From the IMG/VR virus record IMGVR_UViG_3300010403_000705, positions 310,001 through 374,000 of that record: a stretch of 64,000 nucleotides of DNA; one strand, written 5' to 3'. The notes under the pieces were generated by a model that was not told the DNA's origin, made no database searches, and saw nothing but the letters and a program-made list of their open reading frames with translations. The position numbers were made by a program, and so were the translations under genes. Positions 2-64,000 of this stretch are shown piece by piece. Positions within the stretch are counted from its first letter, which is position 1, and the number at the start of each line of letters is the position of its first letter.

Positions 2-739
2 ATTGATCCAGAGGCTTTGATGTCAGATGAGGATGAGCATGTTGCTTTTGGCTGCATGCCATCTTTCAATGTGTATGGGTTGAAAGTAAATATGCCTCCT
101 GCACGTGAGGTGCCTTTTAGGTCTGCCGGCGGTCATATTCACTTCGGTACTAACCGACTGACGCATGCTCAAGCTGAACCAATGGTAAAAGCATTAGATG
201 CTATTCTGGGAGTAGCGTGCGTGTCTTTGTTCGCAGAGTTTGATGATCCTAATCGTCGAAAGCTGTATGGTCTTCCTGGAGAGTATCGATTGCCTCCGCA
301 TGGATTAGAGTATCGACCTCTGAGTAACGCTTGGTTGTCGCATCCTATGATTACTAATTTGGTAATCGACCTAGCTCGTAAGTGTGTAGTCTTTGGTCGT
401 AAGAATCTATTGTCTTCGTTTTGGAAGACAACAGAAGAGGAAACGATTGATACTATCATTCGATGCGATGTGGAAACATCGCATAAAATCTTAGAGCGTA
501 ACCGAGAAGTTCTCAAACAGCTTCTCAAAGCTTCCTATCAACGTGCTGGTGATAGTGATCTTGAGACATTATTTAATGTCTTCAAGAATGGTATCGGCTC
601 AGCTATCAAAAATCCTCGTGATTTCGAGACTAATTGGAAGTTCAAAACTGGGTGGATTGCACATTATGGCGGCGCGGGTGAGCCCAATGTTGCGACGTTT
701 ATGAGTAATCGTCGTCACAATCCCAAGTATCTTATGTGA
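2..739 (+). CDS. phiEco32-like COOH-NH2 ligase type 2, paralog 1 (5'-truncated by window edge)
   Basis: Motifs FGCMPSFN, RSAGGHIHFG, PGEYRLPPHGLEYRPLSNAWL; the frame is open back to position 2; highly similar to the next two ORFs. Confidence 0.85.
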   Translation: MDPEALMSDEDEHVAFGCMPSFNVYGLKVNMPPAREVPFRSAGGHIHFGTNRLTHAQAEPMVKALDAILGVACVSLFAEFDDPNRRKLYGLPGEYRLPPHGLEYRPLSNAWLSHPMITNLVIDLARKCVVFGRKNLLSSFWKTTEEETIDTIIRCDVETSHKILERNREVLKQLLKASYQRAGDSDLETLFNVFKNGIGSAIKNPRDFETNWKFKTGWIAHYGGAGEPNVATFMSNRRHNPKYLM

Positions 740-758
740 TCATTTGTATATATTTTGT

Positions 759-794
759 TTATGGGGAAGATTGGTTAACCAATCTTCCCCATAA
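759..794. terminator. Perfect 36-bp palindrome (hairpin) after ligase 1
   Basis: TTATGGGGAAGATTGGTT|AACCAATCTTCCCCATAA, intergenic, T-rich flanks. Confidence 0.7.
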
Positions 795-888
795 TATTTT
801 GTAATATAGCAATGCTTAGCTTACCCATCCTCACTGTATAAGCATCATGTAAGTACATAATGTAAGCCTTTGGTTAAAAGGATTCAAA

Positions 889-2256
889 ATGAAGATTAAA
901 ATTTCTGATTTGATTAGCACGGGACATTCTGCTGTTGTTCAACATAAGAGTGGATATATTGGTCCGACTTATTATTTGAAGCGAAATAGTAATGAACTTT
1001 CTCGCGATTTGTATGCTGATGGATATTTTTTACCGGATGAAAAGTTTATTATCGTCAATGCTTATAGGCAAGGCGAAGTAACGCATATGTCAGTGGCTAA
1101 TTCATATGATTTTAAAGTACGTGGATATTATGTACCTTATGATCAGGAATTTGATCTGTTAGAGAATGATGATCTTAGTTTTGCTTGGGACGAGGTTAGA
1201 AAATCTAATGTGTCAAGATATCTTCATCATGGATTTACTATTGGTTCTGATCCAGAGATTTTTGTTGAGGATCGAAATGGAAATATGATTCCTGCTTTCC
1301 TATTCCTTGGTTCTAAGGAAGAACCCAATCATACTGCGATAGGTGATCATTATGGTTCCGATGGTGGTCATCCTATGTACTGGGATGGTTTTCAAGCAGA
1401 GTTTACCACTCGTGCCGGACATTGCTTGGAGTATCATACAGACTCAGTAGCTGCTGGTATTAAAGGCGTCTATGATGCAGCTAGGAAAAAATTTCCAGAT
1501 GCACGTCTTAGCTGTCGTAATGTTTTTGATATCTCTAATGATATGCTACAAACTGCTAAAGAAGAGCATGTAGCTTTCGGATGTATGCCGAGCTTTAATG
1601 CTTATGGATTGCAGGTGAATATGCCTCCTGCTCGTGAGGTGTCTTTCAGATCTGCTGGCGGTCATATTCATTTTGGTCTAGGTAAAATTACCAATGACTC
1701 TGCTGTCAGTATTGTTAAAGCATTAGATATGATTGTCGGTGTATCCTGTGTTAGTCTTTTCGATAAATTTGATAATCGAAAAAGAAGAATGATGTATGGT
1801 CTTCCTGGAGAGTATCGATTGCCTCCGCATGGATTAGAGTATCGTACACTTTCCAATGCCTGGCTTATTCATCCTTTCATTATGAATCTGGTGATCGATA
1901 TTGCTAGAAAAGCTGTGGTATTGAGCCAACGTGGTTGGCTAGATCTGTGGGTAAGTGACGAAGAAGAAACGATTGATACTATTATGAGATGCGATGTTGA
2001 GCAAGCTCGTAAGTCTTTGGAAACAAATAAAAAGACATTTATCAATCTGCTTAGTGCTTCTTATATATGGGCTTCTCAAATAGATTTAAATATATTATAT
2101 AATATCTTTTTTAATGGTCTAAAGAGTGTCATTCATGATCCAAATGATTTTGTAGGAAATTGGAAAATCAATGGTGGGTGGTTTCGTTTAGCGAGGGCTG
2201 ATAAGTGTAATGTTAGTCGAAGCATGGAAGACCTTCGTATTGGCAATAAGTTATAG
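889..2256 (+). CDS. phiEco32-like COOH-NH2 ligase type 2, paralog 2
   Basis: FTIGSDPEIFV, DGFQAEF, GGHIHFG, GEYRLPPHGLEYRTLSNAWL; about 115-aa variable N-terminal domain. Confidence 0.85.
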   Translation: MKIKISDLISTGHSAVVQHKSGYIGPTYYLKRNSNELSRDLYADGYFLPDEKFIIVNAYRQGEVTHMSVANSYDFKVRGYYVPYDQEFDLLENDDLSFAWDEVRKSNVSRYLHHGFTIGSDPEIFVEDRNGNMIPAFLFLGSKEEPNHTAIGDHYGSDGGHPMYWDGFQAEFTTRAGHCLEYHTDSVAAGIKGVYDAARKKFPDARLSCRNVFDISNDMLQTAKEEHVAFGCMPSFNAYGLQVNMPPAREVSFRSAGGHIHFGLGKITNDSAVSIVKALDMIVGVSCVSLFDKFDNRKRRMMYGLPGEYRLPPHGLEYRTLSNAWLIHPFIMNLVIDIARKAVVLSQRGWLDLWVSDEEETIDTIMRCDVEQARKSLETNKKTFINLLSASYIWASQIDLNILYNIFFNGLKSVIHDPNDFVGNWKINGGWFRLARADKCNVSRSMEDLRIGNKL

Positions 2257-2329
2257 AGTCACCCATCGTATACGATGATAGACTAATAAGGCAAGCAATA
2301 AGTTAACACACAAATTTCAAGGAACGAAA

Positions 2330-3742
2330 ATGAAGATTACTGATATTCGAAATAGTGGACGATCAATGGCGGTGAAAGTAGCGAAGCGTGATGTCTCTGC
2401 CAGATATTATTTGCGGCGAGATGGTACGCCCACTCAGGATGTACAGATTGAACCATATTCTTTTCCATCGGATGTGTTTGGTATTATTGCAACATACGAT
2501 CGTCATGATTATGTAATTGCAAGCATCATTGATTTCTGTAATTCCAGCCGAGCGCCGCGGAACTATTATATTCCACTGGATTTGGAGTTTACAGAGATTA
2601 CTGCTGACGATCCTTTGTACCAAAAATGGGTCACGTATCAAACGCAGCATCTAGAGATCATGTTGCCTCATGATTTCAGTATTGGTTCTGATCCAGAGAT
2701 TTTTGTTGAGGATAAGGATGGTACGCATATTCCAGCTTTCCTATTCCTTGGATCTAAGGAGGCGCCTGATCGTACTCCTTCTTGGGGAGGTTACGATAAT
2801 AATGGTGGATGCACTATGTATTGGGATGGCTTCCAGGCAGAATTCACAACCAAAGCTGGTGGTTGTTTAGAGTATCATACAGACTCAGTAGCGGCTGGAC
2901 TTCGTGGAGTATATGATGCTGCCCGTCAGAAGTTTCCTAATGCCAGACTTAGCTTGAAGAGTGTAGTAGATATTCCCCATAGCATGTTGGAAGAAGCTGA
3001 AGATCAGTATGTAGCTTTCGGATGTATGCCCAGCTTTAATGCTTATGGAATTAGAGTAAACATGCCTCCTGCACGTGAGGTGCCTTTTAGATCTGCAGGT
3101 GGTCATATTCATTTTGGGATTGGTAAGCTTACTCAAGAGCAAGCTACTCCCATCGTCAAGGCGCTGGATGCTATTCTGGGAGTAGCGTGCGTGTCTTTGT
3201 TTGCTAACTATGATAGTCGAAAACGTAGGCATCTGTATGGTCTTCCTGGAGAGTATCGATTGCCTCCGCATGGATTAGAGTATCGACCTCTGAGTAACGC
3301 TTGGTTGTGTCACCCTTTCATCATGAATCTGGTGATTGATGTGGCAAGAAAGGTACTTGTCCTTGGGCAAAAGGGTTTGCTGAATCTGTGGCAAGGAAAT
3401 GAAGAAGAAACCATTGACATCATGATTCGTTCAGATGTAGAAGGTGCTCGTGAATCCTTAAAAAGAAACAAGGAAATCTTCATCAAAATTCTGGAATCTT
3501 GCTATGTTATTTATAATCGTTGGGCAACTCCTCAGGACCTAGAAATGTTCTATGGTATTTTCCTCAATGGATTAGAAACTGCTATCGCAGATCCTAGCAA
3601 TTTTGTCAAGAATTGGTATCTGAATGGCACTTCACGTGATAACTATGATGATAATGGTAGGGCTTGGCGCAAGCAAGCCTCTGGTTTACACGCCAATGTA
3701 AAGCGTAGCATGGATACGCTTCGCGATGGTAAGAAGCTGTAA
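2330..3742 (+). CDS. phiEco32-like COOH-NH2 ligase type 2, paralog 3
   Basis: FSIGSDPEIFV, DGFQAEF, GGHIHFG, GEYRLPPHGLEYRPLSNAWL. Confidence 0.85.
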   Translation: MKITDIRNSGRSMAVKVAKRDVSARYYLRRDGTPTQDVQIEPYSFPSDVFGIIATYDRHDYVIASIIDFCNSSRAPRNYYIPLDLEFTEITADDPLYQKWVTYQTQHLEIMLPHDFSIGSDPEIFVEDKDGTHIPAFLFLGSKEAPDRTPSWGGYDNNGGCTMYWDGFQAEFTTKAGGCLEYHTDSVAAGLRGVYDAARQKFPNARLSLKSVVDIPHSMLEEAEDQYVAFGCMPSFNAYGIRVNMPPAREVPFRSAGGHIHFGIGKLTQEQATPIVKALDAILGVACVSLFANYDSRKRRHLYGLPGEYRLPPHGLEYRPLSNAWLCHPFIMNLVIDVARKVLVLGQKGLLNLWQGNEEETIDIMIRSDVEGARESLKRNKEIFIKILESCYVIYNRWATPQDLEMFYGIFLNGLETAIADPSNFVKNWYLNGTSRDNYDDNGRAWRKQASGLHANVKRSMDTLRDGKKL

Positions 3743-3749
3743 ATCGGTA

Positions 3750-3791
3750 CATGAGGTTATTGGAGGCGTGAATGCCTCCAATAACCTCATG
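3750..3791 (+). terminator. 18-bp stem hairpin after ligase 3
   Basis: CATGAGGTTATTGGAGGC-GTGAAT-GCCTCCAATAACCTCATG followed by GTTTT. Confidence 0.7.
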
Positions 3792-3804
3792 GTTTTAAGA
3801 TAAT

Positions 3805-4827
3805 ATGCTTTCACTCCTGTTTAAGGTAATAGTTATGACGATAAGACCCTGGATGCAGCAATCACAAGGTCAACAAAGATTAAGAATTGCTGAGCCTTCA
3901 CCAACTCCTAAACAAGAAGTTGATACTGAAAAAAGGTTTGCTGGTGATTGGAATAAGGATGATGAGAACGCAGACACACAACCTGGTATTGGAACAACTA
4001 TCATTAAACATTCACCTCAACAGGAGATGAGTAAAGTGTATACCCCCTATAGTTATAAACCTACGCCGTCAGAAACTTCAAACAAAATATTTGTTTATGG
4101 GACGTGCATGACAGGTTTTTCTTTGAATAAAGTAGTAGCTCGCGACGGTTATATTAGTCCGGCGACAACAACCGCTGTTTATCGTATGATTAATATGTAT
4201 GATGAATATCCCACTATTTTAACGGGTGGTCATACTCGTATCATAGGACAACTATATTATACCACTAGGCGAACTTTGGAATTTTTGGATTCGGTTATGG
4301 ATTGTCCGAGCTTACATCATCGTGATATTATCTCCTTAGAAGATGGAACGCGTGCACATGCCTACATTATCAATCGCTGGAAGACTCCTCTTCGAGAAGA
4401 AGAAATTTTATCAGGAGACTGGATTGAATGGAAGAAGAACTCTCGAACACGAGAGAAAGAAAGAAAAGAAAAATTCAAAGCATTGATGGCTCGTGGTAAA
4501 GCAGAAGCTAAAGCTCGCCAACAAGCTATGGCAGACGATGTTATGACTACTGCTAATGATACAAAACTTACCAGTGTAGTCAAACGCTGGGACCCTATTA
4601 GAGGCGAATTCACTTATTCATTGAATACCTCGGAATCTAAAGTGAGCCCGAATGTTAGTGATAAGAGCATCTCTTCTGTAAGAAATGTTCATATCTCTGA
4701 TATTCCATTATCGGATTTAAAAATCAAATTGATTAATGACGGTATTAATCCTGAAGATTTAGAAGAGCATGCCATACGAATTGCATGCATGTCACGCTAT
4801 GGCTTATGGTATCAGATTGAAGATTAG
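3805..4827 (+). CDS. Gamma-glutamylcyclotransferase (AIG2-like) domain protein with N- and C-terminal extensions
   Basis: IFVYGTCMTG...YPTI...IIGQLY...LEFLD...HHR...AHAY...SGDW; catalytic Glu position appears altered (LDSVM vs LDRVE); start may be 3835. Confidence 0.75.
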   Translation: MLSLLFKVIVMTIRPWMQQSQGQQRLRIAEPSPTPKQEVDTEKRFAGDWNKDDENADTQPGIGTTIIKHSPQQEMSKVYTPYSYKPTPSETSNKIFVYGTCMTGFSLNKVVARDGYISPATTTAVYRMINMYDEYPTILTGGHTRIIGQLYYTTRRTLEFLDSVMDCPSLHHRDIISLEDGTRAHAYIINRWKTPLREEEILSGDWIEWKKNSRTREKERKEKFKALMARGKAEAKARQQAMADDVMTTANDTKLTSVVKRWDPIRGEFTYSLNTSESKVSPNVSDKSISSVRNVHISDIPLSDLKIKLINDGINPEDLEEHAIRIACMSRYGLWYQIED

Positions 4828-4853: not shown

Positions 4854-5096
4854 ATGAAAAAGTATCGACAAGGGCGTGGGCAACGCCCTCTTGAAGTACC
4901 AGATCTTCCTTCTAAAGAAGAGTATGATTTGGCATACCAGATCAATTGGGGAACTAAATCATACCCATCTAAAAGACTTGGAAATATTGATAGAGATAGA
5001 TTATGGGTTGAAGTGATTAAGATTCATAATTCAAAATCTCTAGAAGATAGAAAATGGGTTAGTAGATTCCTTATTGGTTTAGGGTTTGCCCAATGA
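4854..5096 (+). CDS. Small hypothetical protein, RG-x-LP(S/T)xE family member 1
   Basis: N-terminus KKYRQGRGQRPLEVPDLPSKEE shared with the next two ORFs. Confidence 0.6.
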   Translation: MKKYRQGRGQRPLEVPDLPSKEEYDLAYQINWGTKSYPSKRLGNIDRDRLWVEVIKIHNSKSLEDRKWVSRFLIGLGFAQ

Positions 5097-5347
5097 AAAA
5101 GGTTAGAGTGCGACGTGGGAGCGCAGCCTTAGAAGTCTATGAAATGCCTACCAGAGAAGTATGGATAGACGCATACACACGCTTATATGCTAGCACAGAC
5201 TATAGATTTTTTTCTATGAAAAAAGAAAAGATTTTTTCTTGCGAAGAGTTATATCAAGCAACCTTATTGTCACTGCGATCCGTATCACCTAATAATAGAA
5301 GTTGGGGTATCAATATCCTTAGACATTTTTGTTTACCCATCGTCTAA
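5093..5347 (+). CDS. Small hypothetical protein, RG-x-LP(S/T)xE family member 2
   Basis: KKVRVRRGSAALEVYEMPTRE; ATGA overlap with upstream ORF. Confidence 0.6.
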   Translation: MKKVRVRRGSAALEVYEMPTREVWIDAYTRLYASTDYRFFSMKKEKIFSCEELYQATLLSLRSVSPNNRSWGINILRHFCLPIV

Positions 5348-5362
5348 TGAAGTTTGGATAAT

Positions 5363-5752
5363 ATGAGAAAAGTAAAAGTTAAAAGAGGATTGCCTCCTTT
5401 AGAAGTTGCTGTTTTGCCCACCAAAGAACAGTTTAATTCTCAGTGGAAAGAACGTGTAGCTGCCTATTGGCAACCAATACATGTAGCAGATGTTCCTATA
5501 AATGACTTACGCGAAGCTTTACGTTCTGAAGGTGTTAATGTTGATTTATTAAGTGAATCATCTATCAAACTTGAATTTATCTCGCGATTTGGACCATATT
5601 GGACCTCACCGAATAGAACTATGTCTACAGAGTGGGGCTTACTTAATCGTGACCAACTGTGGAATAAAATGGTGGAAGTCCATAATGTTTCACATGACAT
5701 AAGAGAAATCCATCATTATAATGCATGGTTACAACATTTACATTTAAGGTAA
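5363..5752 (+). CDS. Small hypothetical protein, RG-x-LP(S/T)xE family member 3
   Basis: RKVKVKRGLPPLEVAVLPTKE; internal segment resembles the C-terminus of the 3805 ORF. Confidence 0.6.
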   Translation: MRKVKVKRGLPPLEVAVLPTKEQFNSQWKERVAAYWQPIHVADVPINDLREALRSEGVNVDLLSESSIKLEFISRFGPYWTSPNRTMSTEWGLLNRDQLWNKMVEVHNVSHDIREIHHYNAWLQHLHLR

Positions 5753-5770: not shown

Positions 5771-6082
5771 ATGTATAATGTATTATTGATTACTATAGGA
5801 TTTGTGGGATATATTGTAGTCGCTGCATTTGTTTTTGGATGCGCTAGGAGCCTTATTAAAAACGATGAATTAGAAACATTAACATGTGCAGCATTTTGGC
5901 CAATCGTTGTACCACTTTATATTCTTTATAGTATATGTGAATCTCAGAGTAATTTTGGTTTTTATTTTACTGAACGACGTCTCATTAAGTTGAGTAACAA
6001 ATTAAATCATCAGAAACAAATTACTCAAGAACTAGAGAATTTAGAGAAGGAAATAGATCGAGTATATAAAAATGTGATGTAG
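5771..6082 (+). CDS. Small membrane protein
   Basis: Two hydrophobic segments with FWP motif, C-terminal coiled coil. Confidence 0.6.
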   Translation: MYNVLLITIGFVGYIVVAAFVFGCARSLIKNDELETLTCAAFWPIVVPLYILYSICESQSNFGFYFTERRLIKLSNKLNHQKQITQELENLEKEIDRVYKNVM

Positions 6083-6122
6083 TAGCTAAACAAATAAAAA
6101 GTTTCAACTGAAGTTAGATTAC

Positions 6123-6353
6123 TCAAATGCCGTGATAGTTGTTGAGGTTTTATCTTCCGTGCGACTTGCACAGCCGTGCCTGGGAAGCATGAAACTATCT
6201 TATGACATAACTGAAATGTTATGATGTTAATGATGGCAACATTCTAGAATGGAAGTTTATTCTTCTTTGTTTCTAGAAAACAGACCATTTTTATTATTGG
6301 CGATGTCTTCGTACCTCTGCCAACATAAGTCATCACACGGATAAAACATTTGA
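6123..6353 (+). ncRNA. Putative structured non-coding RNA upstream of the tRNA-Val-like gene
   Basis: ORF-free gap; closing helices TCAAATG/CATTTGA and CCGTG/CACGG; internal stems GATAGTT/AACTATC, CTTCC/GGAAG, TTCTAGAA pair, TTGGC/GCCAA. Confidence 0.45.
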
Positions 6354-6550
6354 ATTGATAGGTCTTCCCATCACTTTAGAATCGGTTCTTGCATCATATG
6401 ATGCGTTTCTTACGAAACAATAATTCATAGATAAAAATAGAATAATTACTAAATTGATGTATGTGAAGAATAGGGATAGAGTTCCAAGTTAATCTGGTAT
6501 ACTCTATACGCTTTGTATTTTGGTTAGTTACTTAATCATATTTTTATTAT

Positions 6551-6752
6551 GTACCTTTAGCTTAAAAGACAATACCGACGCATTATAATTCTTTGTATTT
6601 TCTCTGCAAAGAGACGTAGCATTTTAACCTCTCCCTCATAAGAGATAATGTTGAATGGTGACGTACATCGTTGATTATAGACTTCTGGTATTAGGACGAG
6701 CACCCTTCTAACACAAGGGAGGTTGAGGGTTCGAGCCCCTCAAGGTACACCA
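6551..6752 (+). tRNA. tRNA-Val(AAC) with ~125-nt structured insertion in the D-loop
   Basis: Acceptor GTACCTT/AAGGTAC, A73, encoded CCA; D stem GCTT/GAGC; anticodon arm CCCTT-CTAACAC-AAGGG; T arm GAGGG-TTCGAGC-CCCTC; the D-loop spans 6564-6697. Confidence 0.8.
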
Positions 6753-8761: not shown

Positions 8762-9429
8762 CTATTTGCTAAAAGAAATATAACATTTATGCATTTTGAA
8801 TATTTTGATCGTTACGCTTTATGTAAACTTTTCATTGAAAAAGAATCACCACATACATCCTATGAAAATATAGGATTTGTAATTAAAAGAGGTGAGAGTT
8901 TATTTGTAAGTCTAGCTCATGGTAGAAATAAAAATTCATTGGTAAGTTTAAGCGATCCTTCTTTTATTTCTGAAGGAAGGAAATTGGACCATGAAATTAT
9001 CCATGGTTGGGCTGTCCTTGTAAGTTAATGTTAATATGGAACCTACTTTTTGGTGGAACTATGATTTATTTCGAGTATCACAATCTTCAAGAAAACTAAT
9101 AGAGCAAGCAATTCTTGAAGGAACAATGAATTTAACTCACAATGTTAAACCAAAAATTGTGATGAATACATTCGAAGTTCTATATGATGTTGTGGTGCAT
9201 AAGAACGGAAGTCATCCTGGTTGGGTGAGTATCTCTTTGTTTAGATGTATGGAATGTAAATTATTCCTTAATCAACTTAAATGTTGGAGATGTTCTCAAA
9301 CTTCCCATCAATCTCACTCTTAATCATGGTATACATGTAAGACATGCAATAGTGATTCTAGCAAAATTCTGGCACGTATCGAATCAAATAATGACTCCTA
9401 AATTCGTGTGGTGGTCGCCCACGACGATA

Positions 9430-9582
9430 TGTGCCAAGAGCTACATAAAGTTTCTAAGCCGTGTGGGTTCGAATCCCACTCTATACTAGTGTGGTATAGA
9501 TGGCAGGAAAAATAAAAGGGAGACGCTAAGATCATGGTGATCTTTGGTACGAAACTGATGTAGCATATTAGGGAGAGGCACA
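9430..9582 (+). ncRNA. Circularly permuted tRNA-like RNA (Y RNA/YrlA-like architecture)
   Basis: Order is T arm (GTGGG-TTCGAAT-CCCAC), acceptor stem closed by a loop (TCTATAC-TAGTGTG-GTATAGA), D arm, anticodon-like hairpin; 5' and 3' ends pair (TGTGCC/GGCACA, GCTACAT/ATGTAGC, GTTTC/GAAAC, GCC/GGT). Confidence 0.75.
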
Positions 9583-9770
9583 ATGAATCATTATCACTTT
9601 GCTTCTCCCAAAATTTTATATAATAATTTATGATTAAATTATTACTGTATTTGATTGGTAGAAGTCCTATACTATCTTCATTGTGGATAACAGTATATTT
9701 TTTTCTACTAAAATTGCGCAGGAAAAACCGGATTCGATCAAAACGTGAATCCTTTACCAAGAATAAACAA

Positions 9771-13218: not shown

Positions 13219-13251
13219 TTTAAGTACCCGCTCTTGCTGTTCTTAATAAAG

Positions 13252-13559
13252 TTGGTGGCAGGTATTAGTTATTGTAAAGATGTTGGCATATGTAAACTAT
13301 AGCGCCGGCATTAAGCAATATGTTCGTGCGGTAACATACAGAAATTCTCTAGCTTTGAGAAAAACAATATAGTTACATTTAGCAGCCAGTAAACTCATGA
13401 CTTAGTTTATCAGTAATGCTAAGTGTTTAATCTAGGAGATGAAAGGGTATTTCTGTCTAGTCATATGTAAGAAGAAATGAGTCCAAAATAAAATACGTTG
13501 CATCAATTGAGATGATGATATTTAATATCATGCAGGTGCGATATTTGCCAACGTACCAA
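13252..13559 (+). ncRNA. Putative structured non-coding RNA abutting a tRNA-like gene
   Basis: ORF-free; closing helix TTGGT-GGCAGGTAT / ATATTTGCC..ACCAA; internal stems ATGTAA..CTATA/TATAGTTACAT, TATGTT/AACATA, TTCTC/GAGAA, TAAACT/AGTTTA. Confidence 0.45.
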
Positions 13560-13561
13560 AT

Positions 13562-13651
13562 GCCGAATTAGTACAATGAAAATGTCTATGCGCAAAGACT
13601 AAGTACGCCACTCATAAAGCGGTAATTTGGGTTTGATTCCCGAGTTCGGCT
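13562..13651 (+). tRNA. Aberrant tRNA-like gene with expanded D-loop; anticodon ambiguous (CTCATAA present, possibly Met/Ile2-derived)
   Basis: Acceptor GCCGAAT/GTTCGGC; D stem GTAC/GTAC with 28-nt loop containing a GTCT/AGAC hairpin; imperfect anticodon stem; T arm TTGGG-TTTGATT-CCCGA; ends T-CTA. Confidence 0.6.
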
Positions 13652-13739
13652 CTATCTGCAATTGCTACCCATCAATCAACACTAAATGATTAGATTTGTA
13701 GAAATCAATTGAAACACTTAACATAAGGAAAATATAAAC

Positions 13740-28645: not shown

Positions 28646-28675
28646 TGAATTAATGTGTATTAGTTAAGTTTATAG

Positions 28676-28748
28676 AGTAGAATATTGTATCGGTAGCATA
28701 ACTTGGTTTAAATCCAGGAAAGTACAGGTTCAATTCCTGTTTCTACTT
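28676..28748 (+). tRNA. Atypical tRNA-like gene, anticodon TAA, short variable loop
   Basis: Acceptor AGTAGAA/TTCTACT; anticodon arm CTTGG-TTTAAAT-CCAGG; T arm ACAGG-TTCAATT-CCTGT; weak D stem; no CCA. Confidence 0.6.
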
Positions 28749-28850
28749 TAAATTAATTGATCAATTATTTTAGATGGATGTTCGTTTCATTCACTTGACG
28801 CCAAGAAAATTCAAAATTGATTCAAAATTAAACAGAAGGAATATTGTCTT

Positions 28851-29604: not shown

Positions 29605-31686
29605 ATGGATGAAGAAGAGAATGATTTAGTAAATGACGCAGAGCCAGTACAACCCATCGAACCACTAGATGTAGGAGCGGATGTTCCAGTAATAGCTCCA
29701 GTGCCAATACCACCACCACCACCTCTTCCTCAACCTCGTCCTGTTCCTTTTATTAATAATTATGAAAGGATTAGACCACAAGCGATTTGGATGGAAGATG
29801 AACCCCGTAATGACTACTGGGAATATGAAAACCAACAGGCTCGTGAGGAGGATTTTAGGGTAAGGTTGCAACGTTATAGACAGGTCGCCGCCGCCGGCGT
29901 CGCGCCGTGGCTTAATAGAGATTGGGAAATTTGGTCGCAACAGAACGTGGGCGCAGCTCACCCAGTACCTAATCCTCATATTCCGGTGCCCAGAAACCCA
30001 AATATAAATCAATTTATAAACCAAATTATTAATAATGAGGAAATAAGAGAGCGTCACATGAATTATGATCAGTTGGTAAGAAGATATCCATCATTGGTAG
30101 ACAGGTATCTTCCTGATTTATCCAATAAGGCTAATGCTTTGAGTGCATTACGAAGTATTGAATCTGATAGAAATGCAACTCTAGAAGAGAAAACGGCACT
30201 TCGTGATTATGTAGGCAATCACGAAGTAGCATCTGTTTATAACTATCAGTGGTGTGTTGACTGCGAATCAATGGTAGGGCATCCTAATCATACACATTGT
30301 CCACATTGTATTTATCCATGTACTGTTGTTGAGCCGGGTCATGTTAATCCTCCATCCAATACTCAGTTAGCAGTATGTGGATTTTGTGGAGAATGTTGTC
30401 GTAGTAAAGGTCATAGATACTGTCCTACTTGCAATACTCACAGTGATAGATTATGTCGACATTGCAGTAAATGTACTGCTTGCTGTGCTTGTCAACTTTG
30501 TCCCGCACGAGGTTGTCAAGAGATGCAAGAATGTAATGATTGTTGTAATTGTCTCGATCATTGTACCTGTCCAGCACTACAATCTAATGGTACATATGGT
30601 AAATCTTTTCCAGCTTTCAAAAAGAAAGAGCGTCGACTGTTTGATTGCCAACGTCTAGCTGGTGTAGAGTGGGAGTACAATCGATTATCTACACAAAGAT
30701 ATTTCGACCATTGGGTAAAGAAGTGGTTAGCGGATCGGCACCAAGATGATTCATGCGGTTATGAAGCCGTTACAGCTCCCATCGCTGGCGACTACATGGT
30801 CAAATGTATAGAGGCTTTGGGAAAAGTTTTTGAAAAGAGTAAGGCGTCAATTGATAATCGATGTTCAATTCATGTACATGCAGATGCAAAAGACCTTCAG
30901 TGGTCAGATATGTTCAGACTGTTGAAAGTCTATTCGATTGTAGAACCTGTTCTTTATATGTTAGCAGGGCAAGAACGCCTCGATAATAGATATTGTGTGC
31001 CCTGTGGTAAAGATTATGCTGCTGCTCTTGAAAGGATTGATCGTAAAGATGCAGTCATGGCTGTAGCATTTACTCCCATTACACGTGATGGAAGAAAAAG
31101 TGAAGTCAATCTTATTCCTGATAATGGTCGCAATTCACAGCGTGCCAAACCAGGAAAACGTGCCGATAATCATGCGTATTGTCGACGCAAAGGATTGAAC
31201 ATTCTTCCTTGGTTGGCTGGTCGAGGACCTCGACCAAACACTCCAGTTAGCATCGTAACTCAAGCCAATGATACAATTGAAAAAATTGCGCAACGCAATA
31301 ATGTTTCAATTGCGGCATTGATGCGTTGGAATAAGATTAAACCTGGTACGCGTTTTGCGGCTGGACAAAGACTTATCGTCAATAAGCGTATTGTGGCACC
31401 TGATACTACAGTGGAGTTTAGAATTCACCCTAACACACATGATGCTAATCGTGTTATTAATTGGGTGAAAGTTATACTGCGTTTGGTTGATTGGGCAGCT
31501 AAATCAACTGATAACGATTTAGAGAAACTTCCTAAGTCAGCCCTTAGGATTCTCTGTCAAGTCATTGCACCCGAATGTGCTCCTTGGATCATGTCGAGAG
31601 TGCAAGAGTGGCGTAAGGAAACATCAAAAATCAATGGACGTCACGAGCGTCGCATTAGCCTAAAGGGCGGAAAGTACAGTTACTAA
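29605..31686 (+). CDS. Putative amidoligase (Amidoligase_2/GCS-like) with Pro-rich N-terminus, Cys-rich region and inserted LysM domain
   Basis: GVEWE, DDSCGYEAVTAP, CSIHVH, TVEFR; LysM-like TQANDTIEKIAQRNNVSIAALMRWNKI...GQRLIV; many CxxC. Confidence 0.8.
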   Translation: MDEEENDLVNDAEPVQPIEPLDVGADVPVIAPVPIPPPPPLPQPRPVPFINNYERIRPQAIWMEDEPRNDYWEYENQQAREEDFRVRLQRYRQVAAAGVAPWLNRDWEIWSQQNVGAAHPVPNPHIPVPRNPNINQFINQIINNEEIRERHMNYDQLVRRYPSLVDRYLPDLSNKANALSALRSIESDRNATLEEKTALRDYVGNHEVASVYNYQWCVDCESMVGHPNHTHCPHCIYPCTVVEPGHVNPPSNTQLAVCGFCGECCRSKGHRYCPTCNTHSDRLCRHCSKCTACCACQLCPARGCQEMQECNDCCNCLDHCTCPALQSNGTYGKSFPAFKKKERRLFDCQRLAGVEWEYNRLSTQRYFDHWVKKWLADRHQDDSCGYEAVTAPIAGDYMVKCIEALGKVFEKSKASIDNRCSIHVHADAKDLQWSDMFRLLKVYSIVEPVLYMLAGQERLDNRYCVPCGKDYAAALERIDRKDAVMAVAFTPITRDGRKSEVNLIPDNGRNSQRAKPGKRADNHAYCRRKGLNILPWLAGRGPRPNTPVSIVTQANDTIEKIAQRNNVSIAALMRWNKIKPGTRFAAGQRLIVNKRIVAPDTTVEFRIHPNTHDANRVINWVKVILRLVDWAAKSTDNDLEKLPKSALRILCQVIAPECAPWIMSRVQEWRKETSKINGRHERRISLKGGKYSY

Positions 31687-52562: not shown

Positions 52563-52644
52563 GGGCGTGTGGGTTGATTACAAATTGGCATAGTATACGG
52601 ACTTAAAATCCGCACCTTTGAGGGTTCGAATCCCTCCATGCCTA
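52563..52644 (+). tRNA. Atypical tRNA-Leu(TAA)
   Basis: Acceptor GGGCGTG/CATGCCT, A73; D arm TAC-AAATTGGCATA-GTA; loop CTTAAAA; T arm GAGGG-TTCGAAT-CCCTC; about 7 extra nt before the D stem; short variable region. Confidence 0.7.
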
Positions 52645-53021
52645 CCTGATAATGGTAAAGACAAGAAAGTAATGTTTCAATGTAAGCATAGTAAGACTGG
52701 TCCTTGTTATGAGTGTGTGAGCGAAAAAAATCATTATGCGGATCTCAATGCTGAGAAAAAGCAGAGAGAAGATGAACAAGAATATTATCGAAGTTGTTGC
52801 GATAGTTCACAAATTATGCATTATGAAATTAATAGAGCTGGTCGCCTTGCTTGCGGTTATTCTTGGGACGAGGTACGTAAACATAATGAGAAATTTACCA
52901 GCGATTCTTTTATATTTGAAGATCGAGTTCGCAGTAAAATAGCTTGTGAACAATGTGCAAAATATTTTCTTAAATTGAAAAAAAGGATATGATAGCTCAA
53001 TAAACTATCAATTTAATAAAA

Positions 53022-54557
53022 ATGTCTAAAATAGAATGGACAATAGATCGAAAAAATGATTCCTGTTGCCGGATTAATAATTCTCTAGGTATAGATATTG
53101 ATCTTTTTGCAAATGATGATGTGGTTATTGATAGAGATGCCTTTCAAGAACTTTTTGATTTCTTAGATGTGCAACGCGCAATTTCTGATATTTCTTCTGC
53201 AGAAAAATCAGGAAATTTTTCTTTTTTTGGAAACCCTAATGCTGGAATTACTAAAGTTGTTTTAACTCCTGATTTTCACAAAGGCTCTGGTATTCCTATT
53301 GGAACAGTGGTGGAGAATAATGGTTTTGTTATTCCAGCAGCCATTGGAAATGATATTTGTTGTGGAATGAGATTATTAGTAACAGATATGCCAGTAACTA
53401 AATTAGAAAATCATTGGGGAACTATTCAAAAACGTTTGAGAGAAATCTTCTTTCAAGGACAACGAAACATTCCTATGTCTCCACGACAAAGAGAATCTGT
53501 TCTTCGTTATGGGTTACCAGGATTATTAGAAACCATTAAAGACAATGAAAATACAGGTATTTATCAACATTTTAATGTTAAAAATCAAATAGCTGATCTA
53601 GCCAGAGCTCATAATAATGGTGGATTTAATACCGACAGATTGTTTGGTTTTGATAAGTTGATACGCAGTTCTGGAGCCATTGACGGTAGAGATCCACAAA
53701 TTGGTTCAGTAGGCGGTGGTAATCATTTTGTAGAGTTTCAAAAAATCGAAGAAATTTTGTGTAAACAAACTGCCAGAGAAATGAATATTAACAGTGGTAA
53801 CCTAGCTATTATGATTCATTCTGGATCTGTTAGTTTAGGACACGCAGTTGGCTGGCATTTTATTGATCGTGCAAGAGAACTCTTTCCGTCTCAAATAAAA
53901 AGTCCAAAAAATAATTTCTTTGTTCTACCTACAGTTGGACCATATGCTAAAGAAGGCAAATTTTATCTAAATAGTATGAGAAATGCAGCGAATTTTGCTT
54001 TTGCTAATAGGTTATTTTTAGGTCTTATGGCGATCAAAGCCGTACAAGAAGCAATTGGTTGTTATGTAGATTCCAGACTTATTTATGACGCTCCTCATAA
54101 TTTAGTTTTTGAAAAGAATGATGGTCAATTTATACACCGTAAAGGCGCTACACCCGCAGAAGGTCCAGACAAAGTAGACCAATGGATTGGAAAACCAGTT
54201 ATTATTCCTGGGTCAATGGGCAGTGCTAGTTATTTGCTAACTGGATTAGGCAATCCAGAAGCCTTAGAAAGCGCATGTCACGGTGCAGGACGATTAATGC
54301 CTCGCGGAGTAGCCTCTCATGTAGATGATAAGATTTTTGATGATCAGACATGTGATTTGCGTATTGTGACTGCTGTAGATCCAAAATCGCCTCAAATGCA
54401 AATGAGAAAAGATATTATGATTAAATATAAAGAGAGAGTTAAAGAAGAAGCACCTTATGCTTATAAACCAATTACACCAATTATTCGATCTATTGAAGAT
54501 GCACACATTGCTAGAGTAGTAGCTAAGCTAATGCCATTGTGCACGGTAAAAGGATAG
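53022..54557 (+). CDS. rtcB: RtcB family RNA ligase
   Basis: PDFHKG.GIPIG, GNDICCG, GSVGGGNHFVE, HSGS, HN, HRKGA, PGSMG, HGAGR, EEAP.AYK. Confidence 0.95.
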   Translation: MSKIEWTIDRKNDSCCRINNSLGIDIDLFANDDVVIDRDAFQELFDFLDVQRAISDISSAEKSGNFSFFGNPNAGITKVVLTPDFHKGSGIPIGTVVENNGFVIPAAIGNDICCGMRLLVTDMPVTKLENHWGTIQKRLREIFFQGQRNIPMSPRQRESVLRYGLPGLLETIKDNENTGIYQHFNVKNQIADLARAHNNGGFNTDRLFGFDKLIRSSGAIDGRDPQIGSVGGGNHFVEFQKIEEILCKQTAREMNINSGNLAIMIHSGSVSLGHAVGWHFIDRARELFPSQIKSPKNNFFVLPTVGPYAKEGKFYLNSMRNAANFAFANRLFLGLMAIKAVQEAIGCYVDSRLIYDAPHNLVFEKNDGQFIHRKGATPAEGPDKVDQWIGKPVIIPGSMGSASYLLTGLGNPEALESACHGAGRLMPRGVASHVDDKIFDDQTCDLRIVTAVDPKSPQMQMRKDIMIKYKERVKEEAPYAYKPITPIIRSIEDAHIARVVAKLMPLCTVKG

Positions 54558-63522: not shown

Positions 63523-63606
63523 GGGCAGGTGGCGAAACTGGTAGACGCAGCGTGCTTAAAACTCGCCGGATTAATCTCCGTAAGGGTTCGAATCCCTTCT
63601 TGCCCA
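63523..63606 (+). tRNA. tRNA-Leu(TAA)
   Basis: GGGCAGG/CTTGCCC, A73; D arm GCG-AAACTGGTAGA-CGC; loop CTTAAAA; long V arm CGGA/TCCG; T arm AAGGG-TTCGAAT-CCCTT; CCA not encoded. Confidence 0.9.
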
Positions 63607-64000
63607 CTTATTCTTAATTTATTATTTTAAAGTAATCGAGTTTATAATGAAAAAAGTTATTGATTTTACTGATTGTAATATCAAGGATTGTAGACATCCC
63701 GAACACAACCCTCCTAATATGATTGTTTTATCCCCAGGCGTTTATGAGCATAAATGCCCTCATTGTGGGCAACTACAACGAGTTATTATTCCATTAAAGC
63801 CAAGATTGTAAATATACTATGTATGAAACTAATTTAGCTGCCGTGCGACAATCCAAGCACCAAGAATTAAATAGTGGTGCTTATCCACTTGCTTCAGAAA
63901 GTGGAATGAAGATTAATCTGATCCTTGATCAGATCAATACCACTGCCCCAGCAATTTCTTTAGATCCTAGTGAATTAGGTGATATTATTACTGCACATGG

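Follow-up and report, generated by a model that had tools for sequence, protein, structure and literature searches.

To our knowledge, interrupted tRNA genes in bacteria and their viruses are limited to those with self-splicing group I introns in the anticodon loop, and extra arms on tRNAs are limited to the variable region. A plus-strand gene in a metagenomic phage genome fits neither description. It encodes a tRNA-Val(AAC)-type RNA whose D-loop comprises 134 nt, which raises the question of whether the intervening RNA stays in the mature molecule as an additional arm, is cut out and the halves rejoined, or belongs to an RNA with a different role. The gene lies at positions 6551-6752 of the window, the 64,000-nt stretch of DNA analysed here.

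The window is part of the metagenomic phage contig IMGVR_UViG_3300010403_000705 (432,844 bp), and the same phage is present as a 447-kb contig in JGI and ENA assemblies. Two DNA searches of the INPHARED phage records gave no DNA-level match to the window. The genes of the window are all on the + strand, and the standard genetic code fits; as it gives 80% coding on this strand, an alternative code is unneeded. A peptide deformylase, a LysM domain and a Shine-Dalgarno-like GGAGAG ahead of the next ORF point to a bacterial host for the phage.

Anatomy and conservation of the interrupted tRNA

The original prediction described a complete tRNA with a 134-nt D-loop, and all the parts that it named are found in place, in agreement with the minimum free energy (MFE) fold. 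The 5' strand of the acceptor stem (GTACCTT, 6551-6557) forms seven of seven pairs with 6742-6748, and six of these pairs are compensatory across lineages. It is followed at 6558-6563 by U8, A9 and the 5' strand of the D stem (GCTT); the TA dinucleotide is invariant, and the 4-bp D stem (6560-6563 with 6698-6701) is 100% paired in six lineages. The D-loop (6564-6697) begins with seven nucleotides, AAAAGAC (6564-6570), the first four of which (AARA, including A14 and A15) are conserved. Then comes the insert, in which a closing helix (AATACC, 6571-6576, with the covarying strand GGTATT, 6687-6692) encloses a variable interior (6577-6686) that is conserved neither in sequence nor in length. The remaining five nucleotides of the loop, AGGAC (6693-6697), carry G18 and G19 at 6694-6695 and have the form N-GG-N-N in 7 of 8 lineages. 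Downstream of the covarying 3' strand of the D stem and A26 (GAGC and A, 6698-6702), the anticodon arm CCCTT-CTAACAC-AAGGG (6703-6719) has a stem that is 100% paired and presents AAC at 6710-6712 together with U33 and A37. The 5-nt variable loop (6720-6724) is that of a class I tRNA and reads AGGTT in five of the six aligned lineages and AGATT in L016. The T arm GAGGG-TTCGAGC-CCCTC (6725-6741) covaries and includes the G53-C61 pair, and the 3' end (6742-6752) consists of the acceptor strand (6742-6748), A73 (6749) and CCA (6750-6752), the last being encoded in 6 of 8 lineages. Sequence and alignment together place the core nucleotides U8, A14, G18, G19, U33, T54-T55-C56 and A58 as well as G53-C61.

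Folded without constraints by RNAfold, the 202 nt adopt the cloverleaf at minimum energy, the insert forming part of the D-loop (z = -1.8). Under strict criteria, a scan for cloverleaves with a long D-loop reports 6551-6752 as the sole site in the window, with no match in 20 shuffles. GTATTTT, which occurs at 6515 and at 6595, was considered as an alternative 5' strand of the acceptor and set aside, since both copies are chance matches rich in G-U pairs and lack homology support. Standard tools do not call the gene: in the window, two tRNA-Leu genes are all that ARAGORN, or Rfam at its gathering score, reports, and the Rfam tRNA model (RF00005) gives 21.6 bits against a gathering score of 29, covering the 3' part alone. 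Pairing and compensatory changes in six lineages establish the four helices of a tRNA cloverleaf, whereas the D-loop, 134 nt here and 63-164 nt in relatives, falls outside the range of about 7-11 nt expected of a tRNA.

Exact and degenerate patterns of the 3' exon, scanned against IMG/VR and JGI metagenomes, returned the source contig only, as did a neighbour search in IMG/VR, and a word-index protein search with the 103-aa neighbour gave only a self-match. An IMG/VR scan for the D-loop-insert layout with a gap of 80-110 produced six matches, all of them tandem tRNAs and hence false positives, and relaxed scanning criteria yielded noise about equal to that of shuffles. Because the DNA patterns returned only the source contig, the GGACT-domain protein encoded 1.7 kb upstream (3805-4827) was taken as an anchor for a word-index search followed by a full HMMER profile search. 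These searches led to diverged homologues, and to a homologue of the element in seven further metagenomic phage lineages: L003 (3336-3504, 169 nt), L007 (12551-12723, 173 nt), L013 (11970-12124, 155 nt), L015 (5679-5810, 132 nt), L016 (2793-2969, 177 nt), L023 (7355-7556, 202 nt) and L025 (6826-7057, 232 nt). All seven share a gene order of COOH-NH2 ligases, GGACT protein, small proteins and then the element, and the neighbouring proteins of the window and L003 are 29-56% identical. The insert occupies the same D-loop position (about 17/18) in 8/8 lineages. A search for insert-less alleles had been proposed as a means of defining the insert boundaries; the boundaries are indeed consistent, but no insert-free orthologue occurs among the eight lineages. 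L025 has stem mismatches and is devoid of G18 G19 and CCA.

Covariation was assessed on a MAFFT alignment (A9) of six distinct sequences, with the cloverleaf and the insert closing helix as the structure. Standard pairs are formed in 98.7% of the cells, and 18 of the 27 pairs show compensatory double changes, distributed over the acceptor stem (6/7), D stem (1/4), anticodon stem (3/5), T stem (4/5) and closing helix (4/6; 96% of its cells pair). None of 500 shuffles reaches any of five covariation measures, and sliding the 3' partners as a control lowers pairing to 42-49%. As every helix contributes compensatory changes, the comparison shows, at the level of sequence, that selection acts on the cloverleaf, the nucleotides of the tertiary core and the basal helix of the insert, and that the interior of the insert is free to change.

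The junction has a constant order of D stem, seven unpaired nucleotides (AARA-NNN), closing helix with interior, five nucleotides N-GG-N-N, and D stem. The 7-nt segment can be read in this form in 8/8 lineages, with an ambiguous start of the closing helix in L013, where this helix is least clear. Conservation of AARA means that A14 and A15 are kept, and A15 can form a Levitt pair with U48. Given the 7-nt/helix/5-nt layout, the insert falls in the variable portion of the D-loop, immediately ahead of G18. Purines are conserved at positions 16/17, where ordinary tRNAs usually have pyrimidines.

The inserts, closing helix included, measure from 51 to about 152 nt, and their interiors have neither sequence nor length in common from one lineage to the next (aligned, they are about 25-30% identical). 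Compared with shuffled sequences, the inserts are not significantly more stable, with z from -0.06 to -2.1 across lineages and z = -1.3 and -0.5 in two runs on the window insert folded alone. It had been proposed that the insert is a folded multibranch domain, perhaps an appended functional one. Its closing helix is real, and the internal stems listed for it do occur in the MFE fold of the window, but they are not conserved in relatives; with z not significant, they are features of one sequence. Since the interior is not conserved and folds no better than shuffled sequence, a functional domain is unsupported. An unstructured and non-conserved insert had been named as grounds for abandoning the proposal, and here the interior is non-conserved and the closing helix covaries.

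Comparison with known interrupted and tRNA-like RNAs

The non-canonical tRNA introns of archaea and of Cyanidioschyzon merolae that occupy D-loop positions resemble this gene in that an intervening sequence with a variable interior lies in the D-loop of an otherwise complete tRNA gene, and they depend on a bulge-helix-bulge (BHB) (PMC4090602, PMC3728597). An RtcB-type ligase is encoded in the archaeal genomes, and the window likewise encodes RtcB at 53022-54557 (E = 3e-90), a ligase of the type that belongs with a BHB intron. In contrast, the phage gene has no BHB at its boundaries. Its absence had been noted from the window and extends to the relatives, as conserved 3-nt bulges with 4 bp between them, in 3-4-3 or relaxed form, are found in no lineage. 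The boundary is actually a 7/5-nt internal loop followed by a plain helix of 6-9 bp. Further differences are the probable bacterial host and the negative Pfam search for a splicing endonuclease domain (EndA/Sen) among the approximately 98 window ORFs.

Group I introns of bacteria and phages also interrupt tRNA genes in a bacterial system. Their site is the anticodon loop, their length is about 200 nt or more, and they possess a conserved catalytic core, whereas the present inserts occupy the D-loop, go down to 51 nt and match no intron or self-cleaving-ribozyme family (hammerhead, twister, HDV-like etc.) in Rfam at E up to 10. The original prediction, that a group I or II intron would need more length than the insert offers, therefore extends to the whole set, at 51-152 nt, without an Rfam intron match or a conserved interior. 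Because the shortest insert, the A/U-rich 51 nt of L015, has no room for a self-splicing core, the insert is probably not self-splicing; the same lack of room makes a small self-cleaving ribozyme unlikely in L015.

Class II tRNAs (Leu, Ser, Tyr, Sec) offer a closer parallel to a retained arm, since their extra helix varies in length between species and is kept in the mature tRNA. That helix leaves the core between positions 44 and 48 and has at most about 21 nt, whereas the phage arm exits from the D-loop at 17/18 and is several times longer; with a variable loop of 5 nt, a class II long variable arm can be ruled out. The tRNA-like domain of tmRNA and the YrlA Y-RNA mimics share with the gene a tRNA-derived fold bearing a large non-tRNA segment. 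Such mimics, sometimes encoded near rtcB, lack an anticodon arm and have extra RNA in its place; here, all four arms are present, and there is neither a G3:U70 pair nor a tag reading frame. A tmRNA is ruled out by the anticodon arm, by the A-U pair at 3:70 and by ARAGORN and Rfam, which find none. Full-text literature searches turned up no account of an insert in the D-loop of a tRNA from bacteria or phages, and as far as this literature shows, the D-loop-insert architecture and its processing are new for bacteria and their viruses.

The upstream RNA and other elements of the locus

Directly upstream of the gene, at window 6066-6547 (+), lies a conserved structured RNA of about 480 nt, which reaches up to about 670 nt in relatives. 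Its ends are joined by a terminal helix (6066-6094 with 6519-6547) in which 26 of 29 positions are paired and which ends 3 nt before the tRNA. Pairing of this helix is 34/36 in L003, 41/44 in L007, 31/31 in L013, 29/29 in L015 and 16/16 in L025, so that in six lineages a helix of 16-44 bp is followed by the tRNA after a spacer of 3-14 nt. The internal helices covary as well, with 11 of 44 pairs in a comparison of two sequences and 32 of 68 predicted pairs compensatory among five. A long perfect terminal duplex is a classic RNase III processing stem, and it is reasonable to suppose that both RNAs are co-transcribed and then released. On the other hand, L023 and L016 keep the tRNA-like gene without a large RNA directly upstream, and therefore the two RNAs are separable. 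In the window and its relatives, the upstream RNA has no Rfam match, the ROOL and GOLLD models included. ROOL and GOLLD are known large phage RNAs near tRNAs (bioRxiv 10.1101/2024.12.08.627333), and the present RNA could represent a new, comparable class.

The motif TGGTATACT (6495-6503) was considered as a shared extended -10 promoter and dropped, since it is part of a hairpin of the upstream RNA that is conserved and covaries. Inside the upstream RNA of L003, positions 2988-3059 form a degenerate tRNA-like unit with an Rfam tRNA score of 21.7 bits and a 9-nt anticodon loop; aligned segments occur in L007 and L013, and the unit is absent from the window and L015.

A second conserved non-coding RNA precedes a 255-aa gene, at window 9370-9520 (within the gap 9324-9629), L009 8053-8487 and L015 8838-9261. 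It comprises an 11-bp covarying stem, GGCACGTATCG with CGATATGTGCC, a conserved loop TGGTCGCC and, after the stem, a perfect T arm GTGGG-TTCGAAT-CCCAC. What would be the 3' strand of the acceptor pairs with downstream sequence (TCTATAC with GTATAGA, covarying in L009), a topology that appears permuted-tRNA-like.

Several further tRNA-like elements occur in the window. About 375 nt upstream of RtcB, an uncalled tRNA-like gene (52563-52645) has the acceptor GGGCGTG/CATGCCT, the anticodon loop CTTAAAA (UAA), the T arm GAGGG-TTCGAAT-CCCTC and an enlarged, irregular D region; it scores a sub-threshold 31 bits with the Rfam tRNA-Sec model. A possible tRNA-like element at 13562-13651 (within the gap 13219-13739) combines the acceptor GCCGAAT/GTTCGGC and the T arm TTGGG-TTTGATT-CCCGA with a D stem, GTAC/GTAC, that encloses 28 nt with a GTCT/AGAC hairpin, and is seen only with relaxed criteria that give many chance matches. 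As to the two called genes, 28675-28749 is a 75-nt tRNA-Leu (taa) without the long variable arm expected of tRNA-Leu, and 63523-63607 is a normal 85-nt tRNA-Leu(taa).

Among the protein-coding genes, three phiEco32-type COOH-NH2 ligases of the window form a cluster with the gamma-glutamyl cyclotransferase-like GGACT protein (17-4827); a fourth ligase lies upstream in L004. Synteny between this cluster and the tRNA locus holds in every lineage, and a family of small paralogous proteins (4854-5752) is encoded between it and the upstream RNA. A separate amidoligase-LysM protein is encoded at 29605-31686, and an HD domain as well as weak matches to the L7/L12 C-terminal domain and DUF5915 occur among the window ORFs.

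Retention or removal of the insert

The anticodon arm provides evidence on whether the RNA decodes. U33, a 3-nt anticodon and A37 are kept in 7/8 lineages, the anticodons of these seven being AAC three times, CAC twice, CAU once and GAA once. A35, C36 and A73 make up the identity set of ValRS in E. coli; A35 and C36 are found in five lineages, and A73 in four of those (presumptively in L025). An A34 in a tRNA-Val is unusual for bacteria. GTT accounts for 296 of the 825 Val codons (36%) in the window ORFs, and the anticodons match codons heavily used by the phage. The anticodon loop is not of 7 nt in 4/8 lineages, as L003, L015 and L016 carry one additional base, invariably on the 5' side of U33, in loops of 8 nt, and in L023 a GAAA tetraloop replaces the loop while acceptor, D stem, GG, T arm and CCA are intact. 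These abnormal loops weaken the assumption that the RNA must pass through the ribosome. Mom-like use of a tRNA (PMC13219725) served as the model for another idea, that of a tRNA-dependent DNA modification by the COOH-NH2 ligase/GGACT cluster; it is not favoured, as the anticodons change between Val, Met and Phe.

When the insert is deleted in silico with 4+5 D-loop nucleotides kept, leaving a 9-nt loop, ARAGORN calls a tRNA in 8/8 lineages: two are Val (aac), the window copy among them, one is Val (cac), one is Met (cat), and the other four have abnormal loops. With 7+5 nucleotides kept, it calls the window copy only.

We interpret the locus as a vertically inherited, tRNA-Val-derived gene of a clade of ~450-kb bacteriophages, with a helix-closed stem-loop between D-loop positions 17 and 18 that is most likely retained as an extra arm. 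Retention is given a probability of roughly 45%, a slight lean only, with cutting and rejoining as a close second. The RNA would be made within a longer + strand transcript, in most lineages after the large RNA enclosed by its RNase III-type stem; RNase P would cut its 5' end, and the 3' end would carry the encoded CCA. The insert would stay in the mature RNA as a solvent-exposed arm, an expansion segment from the "variable pocket" of the D-loop, with G18 G19 still free to lock the elbow. Such a molecule would work mainly via the "top half" formed by acceptor, T and D arms (RNase P, CCA, charging); it need not serve as an ordinary decoder on the ribosome.

Retention is favoured because it needs no unknown enzyme and fits both the relaxed anticodon loops and the conserved purines at 16/17. 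It is further supported by the eight syntenic lineages that all carry the insert at the same position, by the covariation of the cloverleaf and closing helix, by the lack of any known splicing signal and of a splicing endonuclease domain among the approximately 98 window ORFs, and by insert lengths of 51-152 nt, which behave like those of an expansion segment. On the other hand, structural reasoning suggests that RNase P, ValRS and the ribosome would all be impeded by an arm of 50-150 nt beside the G19-C56 platform. The kept U33, anticodon and A37, the constant placing of any extra loop base 5' of U33 and the match to common codons fit a decoding tRNA and thus favour insert removal, as does the contrast between the 4+5 form, callable in 8/8 lineages, and the 7+5 form, callable in only one. 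The RtcB, RNA ligase and RNA-repair domains encoded by the phage also speak against retention.

A possible alternative, which we hold to be less probable than retention, is therefore a protein-dependent intron of a new type. An endonuclease of the phage or its host would read the tRNA body and the 7-nt/helix/5-nt junction and cut on both sides, and the two halves would be sealed by the phage RtcB, or by a ligase of the Rnl type, to give a tRNA-Val(AAC) of ~77 nt for translation. The conserved position and boundaries around a free interior are as expected of such an intron, its removal would account for the callable 9-nt D-loop, and the window encodes, besides RtcB, RNA_ligase, HAD_SAK_2 and two metallophosphoesterases (Metallophos). 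The nearby conserved RNA with its permuted acceptor-like hairpin makes unusual RNA processing plausible in these phages. However, there is neither a BHB nor an endonuclease candidate among the window ORFs, the anticodon loops that depart from 7 nt in 4/8 lineages fit poorly, and we know of no protein-spliced tRNA intron in bacteria or phages. RtcB and RNA ligases of jumbo phages, moreover, are generally read as tRNA repair (PMC7824862). Somewhat unlikely, in our judgement, is the corresponding general proposition of BHB-free, protein-based tRNA splicing in phages, in which a nuclease would excise the variable stem-loop and the phage RtcB or RNA ligase would seal the ends, so that tRNA supply would come to depend on phage RNA processing.

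More doubtful is a processing or handle function, in which a tRNA-like element would act not as an adaptor but in the manner of mascRNA at MALAT1, recruiting RNase P or a tRNA-binding factor so that the large RNA acquires a defined 3' end or the transcript is marked; anticodon and insert would then be largely irrelevant. The short spacer between terminal helix and gene in six lineages and the degenerate anticodon loops of several lineages agree with this, and ROOL and GOLLD are likewise linked to phage tRNAs (bioRxiv 10.1101/2024.12.08.627333). As in MALAT1-mascRNA and in phage GOLLD or ROOL with their tRNAs, a tRNA-shaped unit adjoins a large non-coding RNA, here directly downstream of it in a phage genome. 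In contrast to them, it has a full anticodon arm and is itself interrupted, and the large RNA has no ROOL or GOLLD match. The handle function is also at odds with L023 and L016, where the gene stands without the large RNA directly upstream, with the long terminal helix, which already gives an RNase III route to the ends, and with the covarying anticodon stem and the kept CCA and A73. A functionless tRNA gene decaying after an old insertion could be imagined from L025, with its stem mismatches and lost G18 G19 and CCA, and from the lost anticodon loop of L023, but it is highly improbable, because a dead gene would not keep pairing, and compensatory changes are found in every helix at 29-56% identity of the neighbour proteins (window against L003).

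The finding means that megaphages which have diverged deeply from one another still share a tRNA fold under selection, complete with a large insert in its D-loop, and that standard tRNA finders do not see it. Since such genes escape calling, the tRNA counts of huge phages are underestimates. If the insert is removed, a bacterial system would for the first time be seen to splice a tRNA enzymatically, and phage RtcB would gain a concrete role beyond repair. If it is retained, as we tentatively prefer, it would show the tolerance of the tRNA elbow and point to tRNA-shaped RNAs with jobs outside ordinary decoding.
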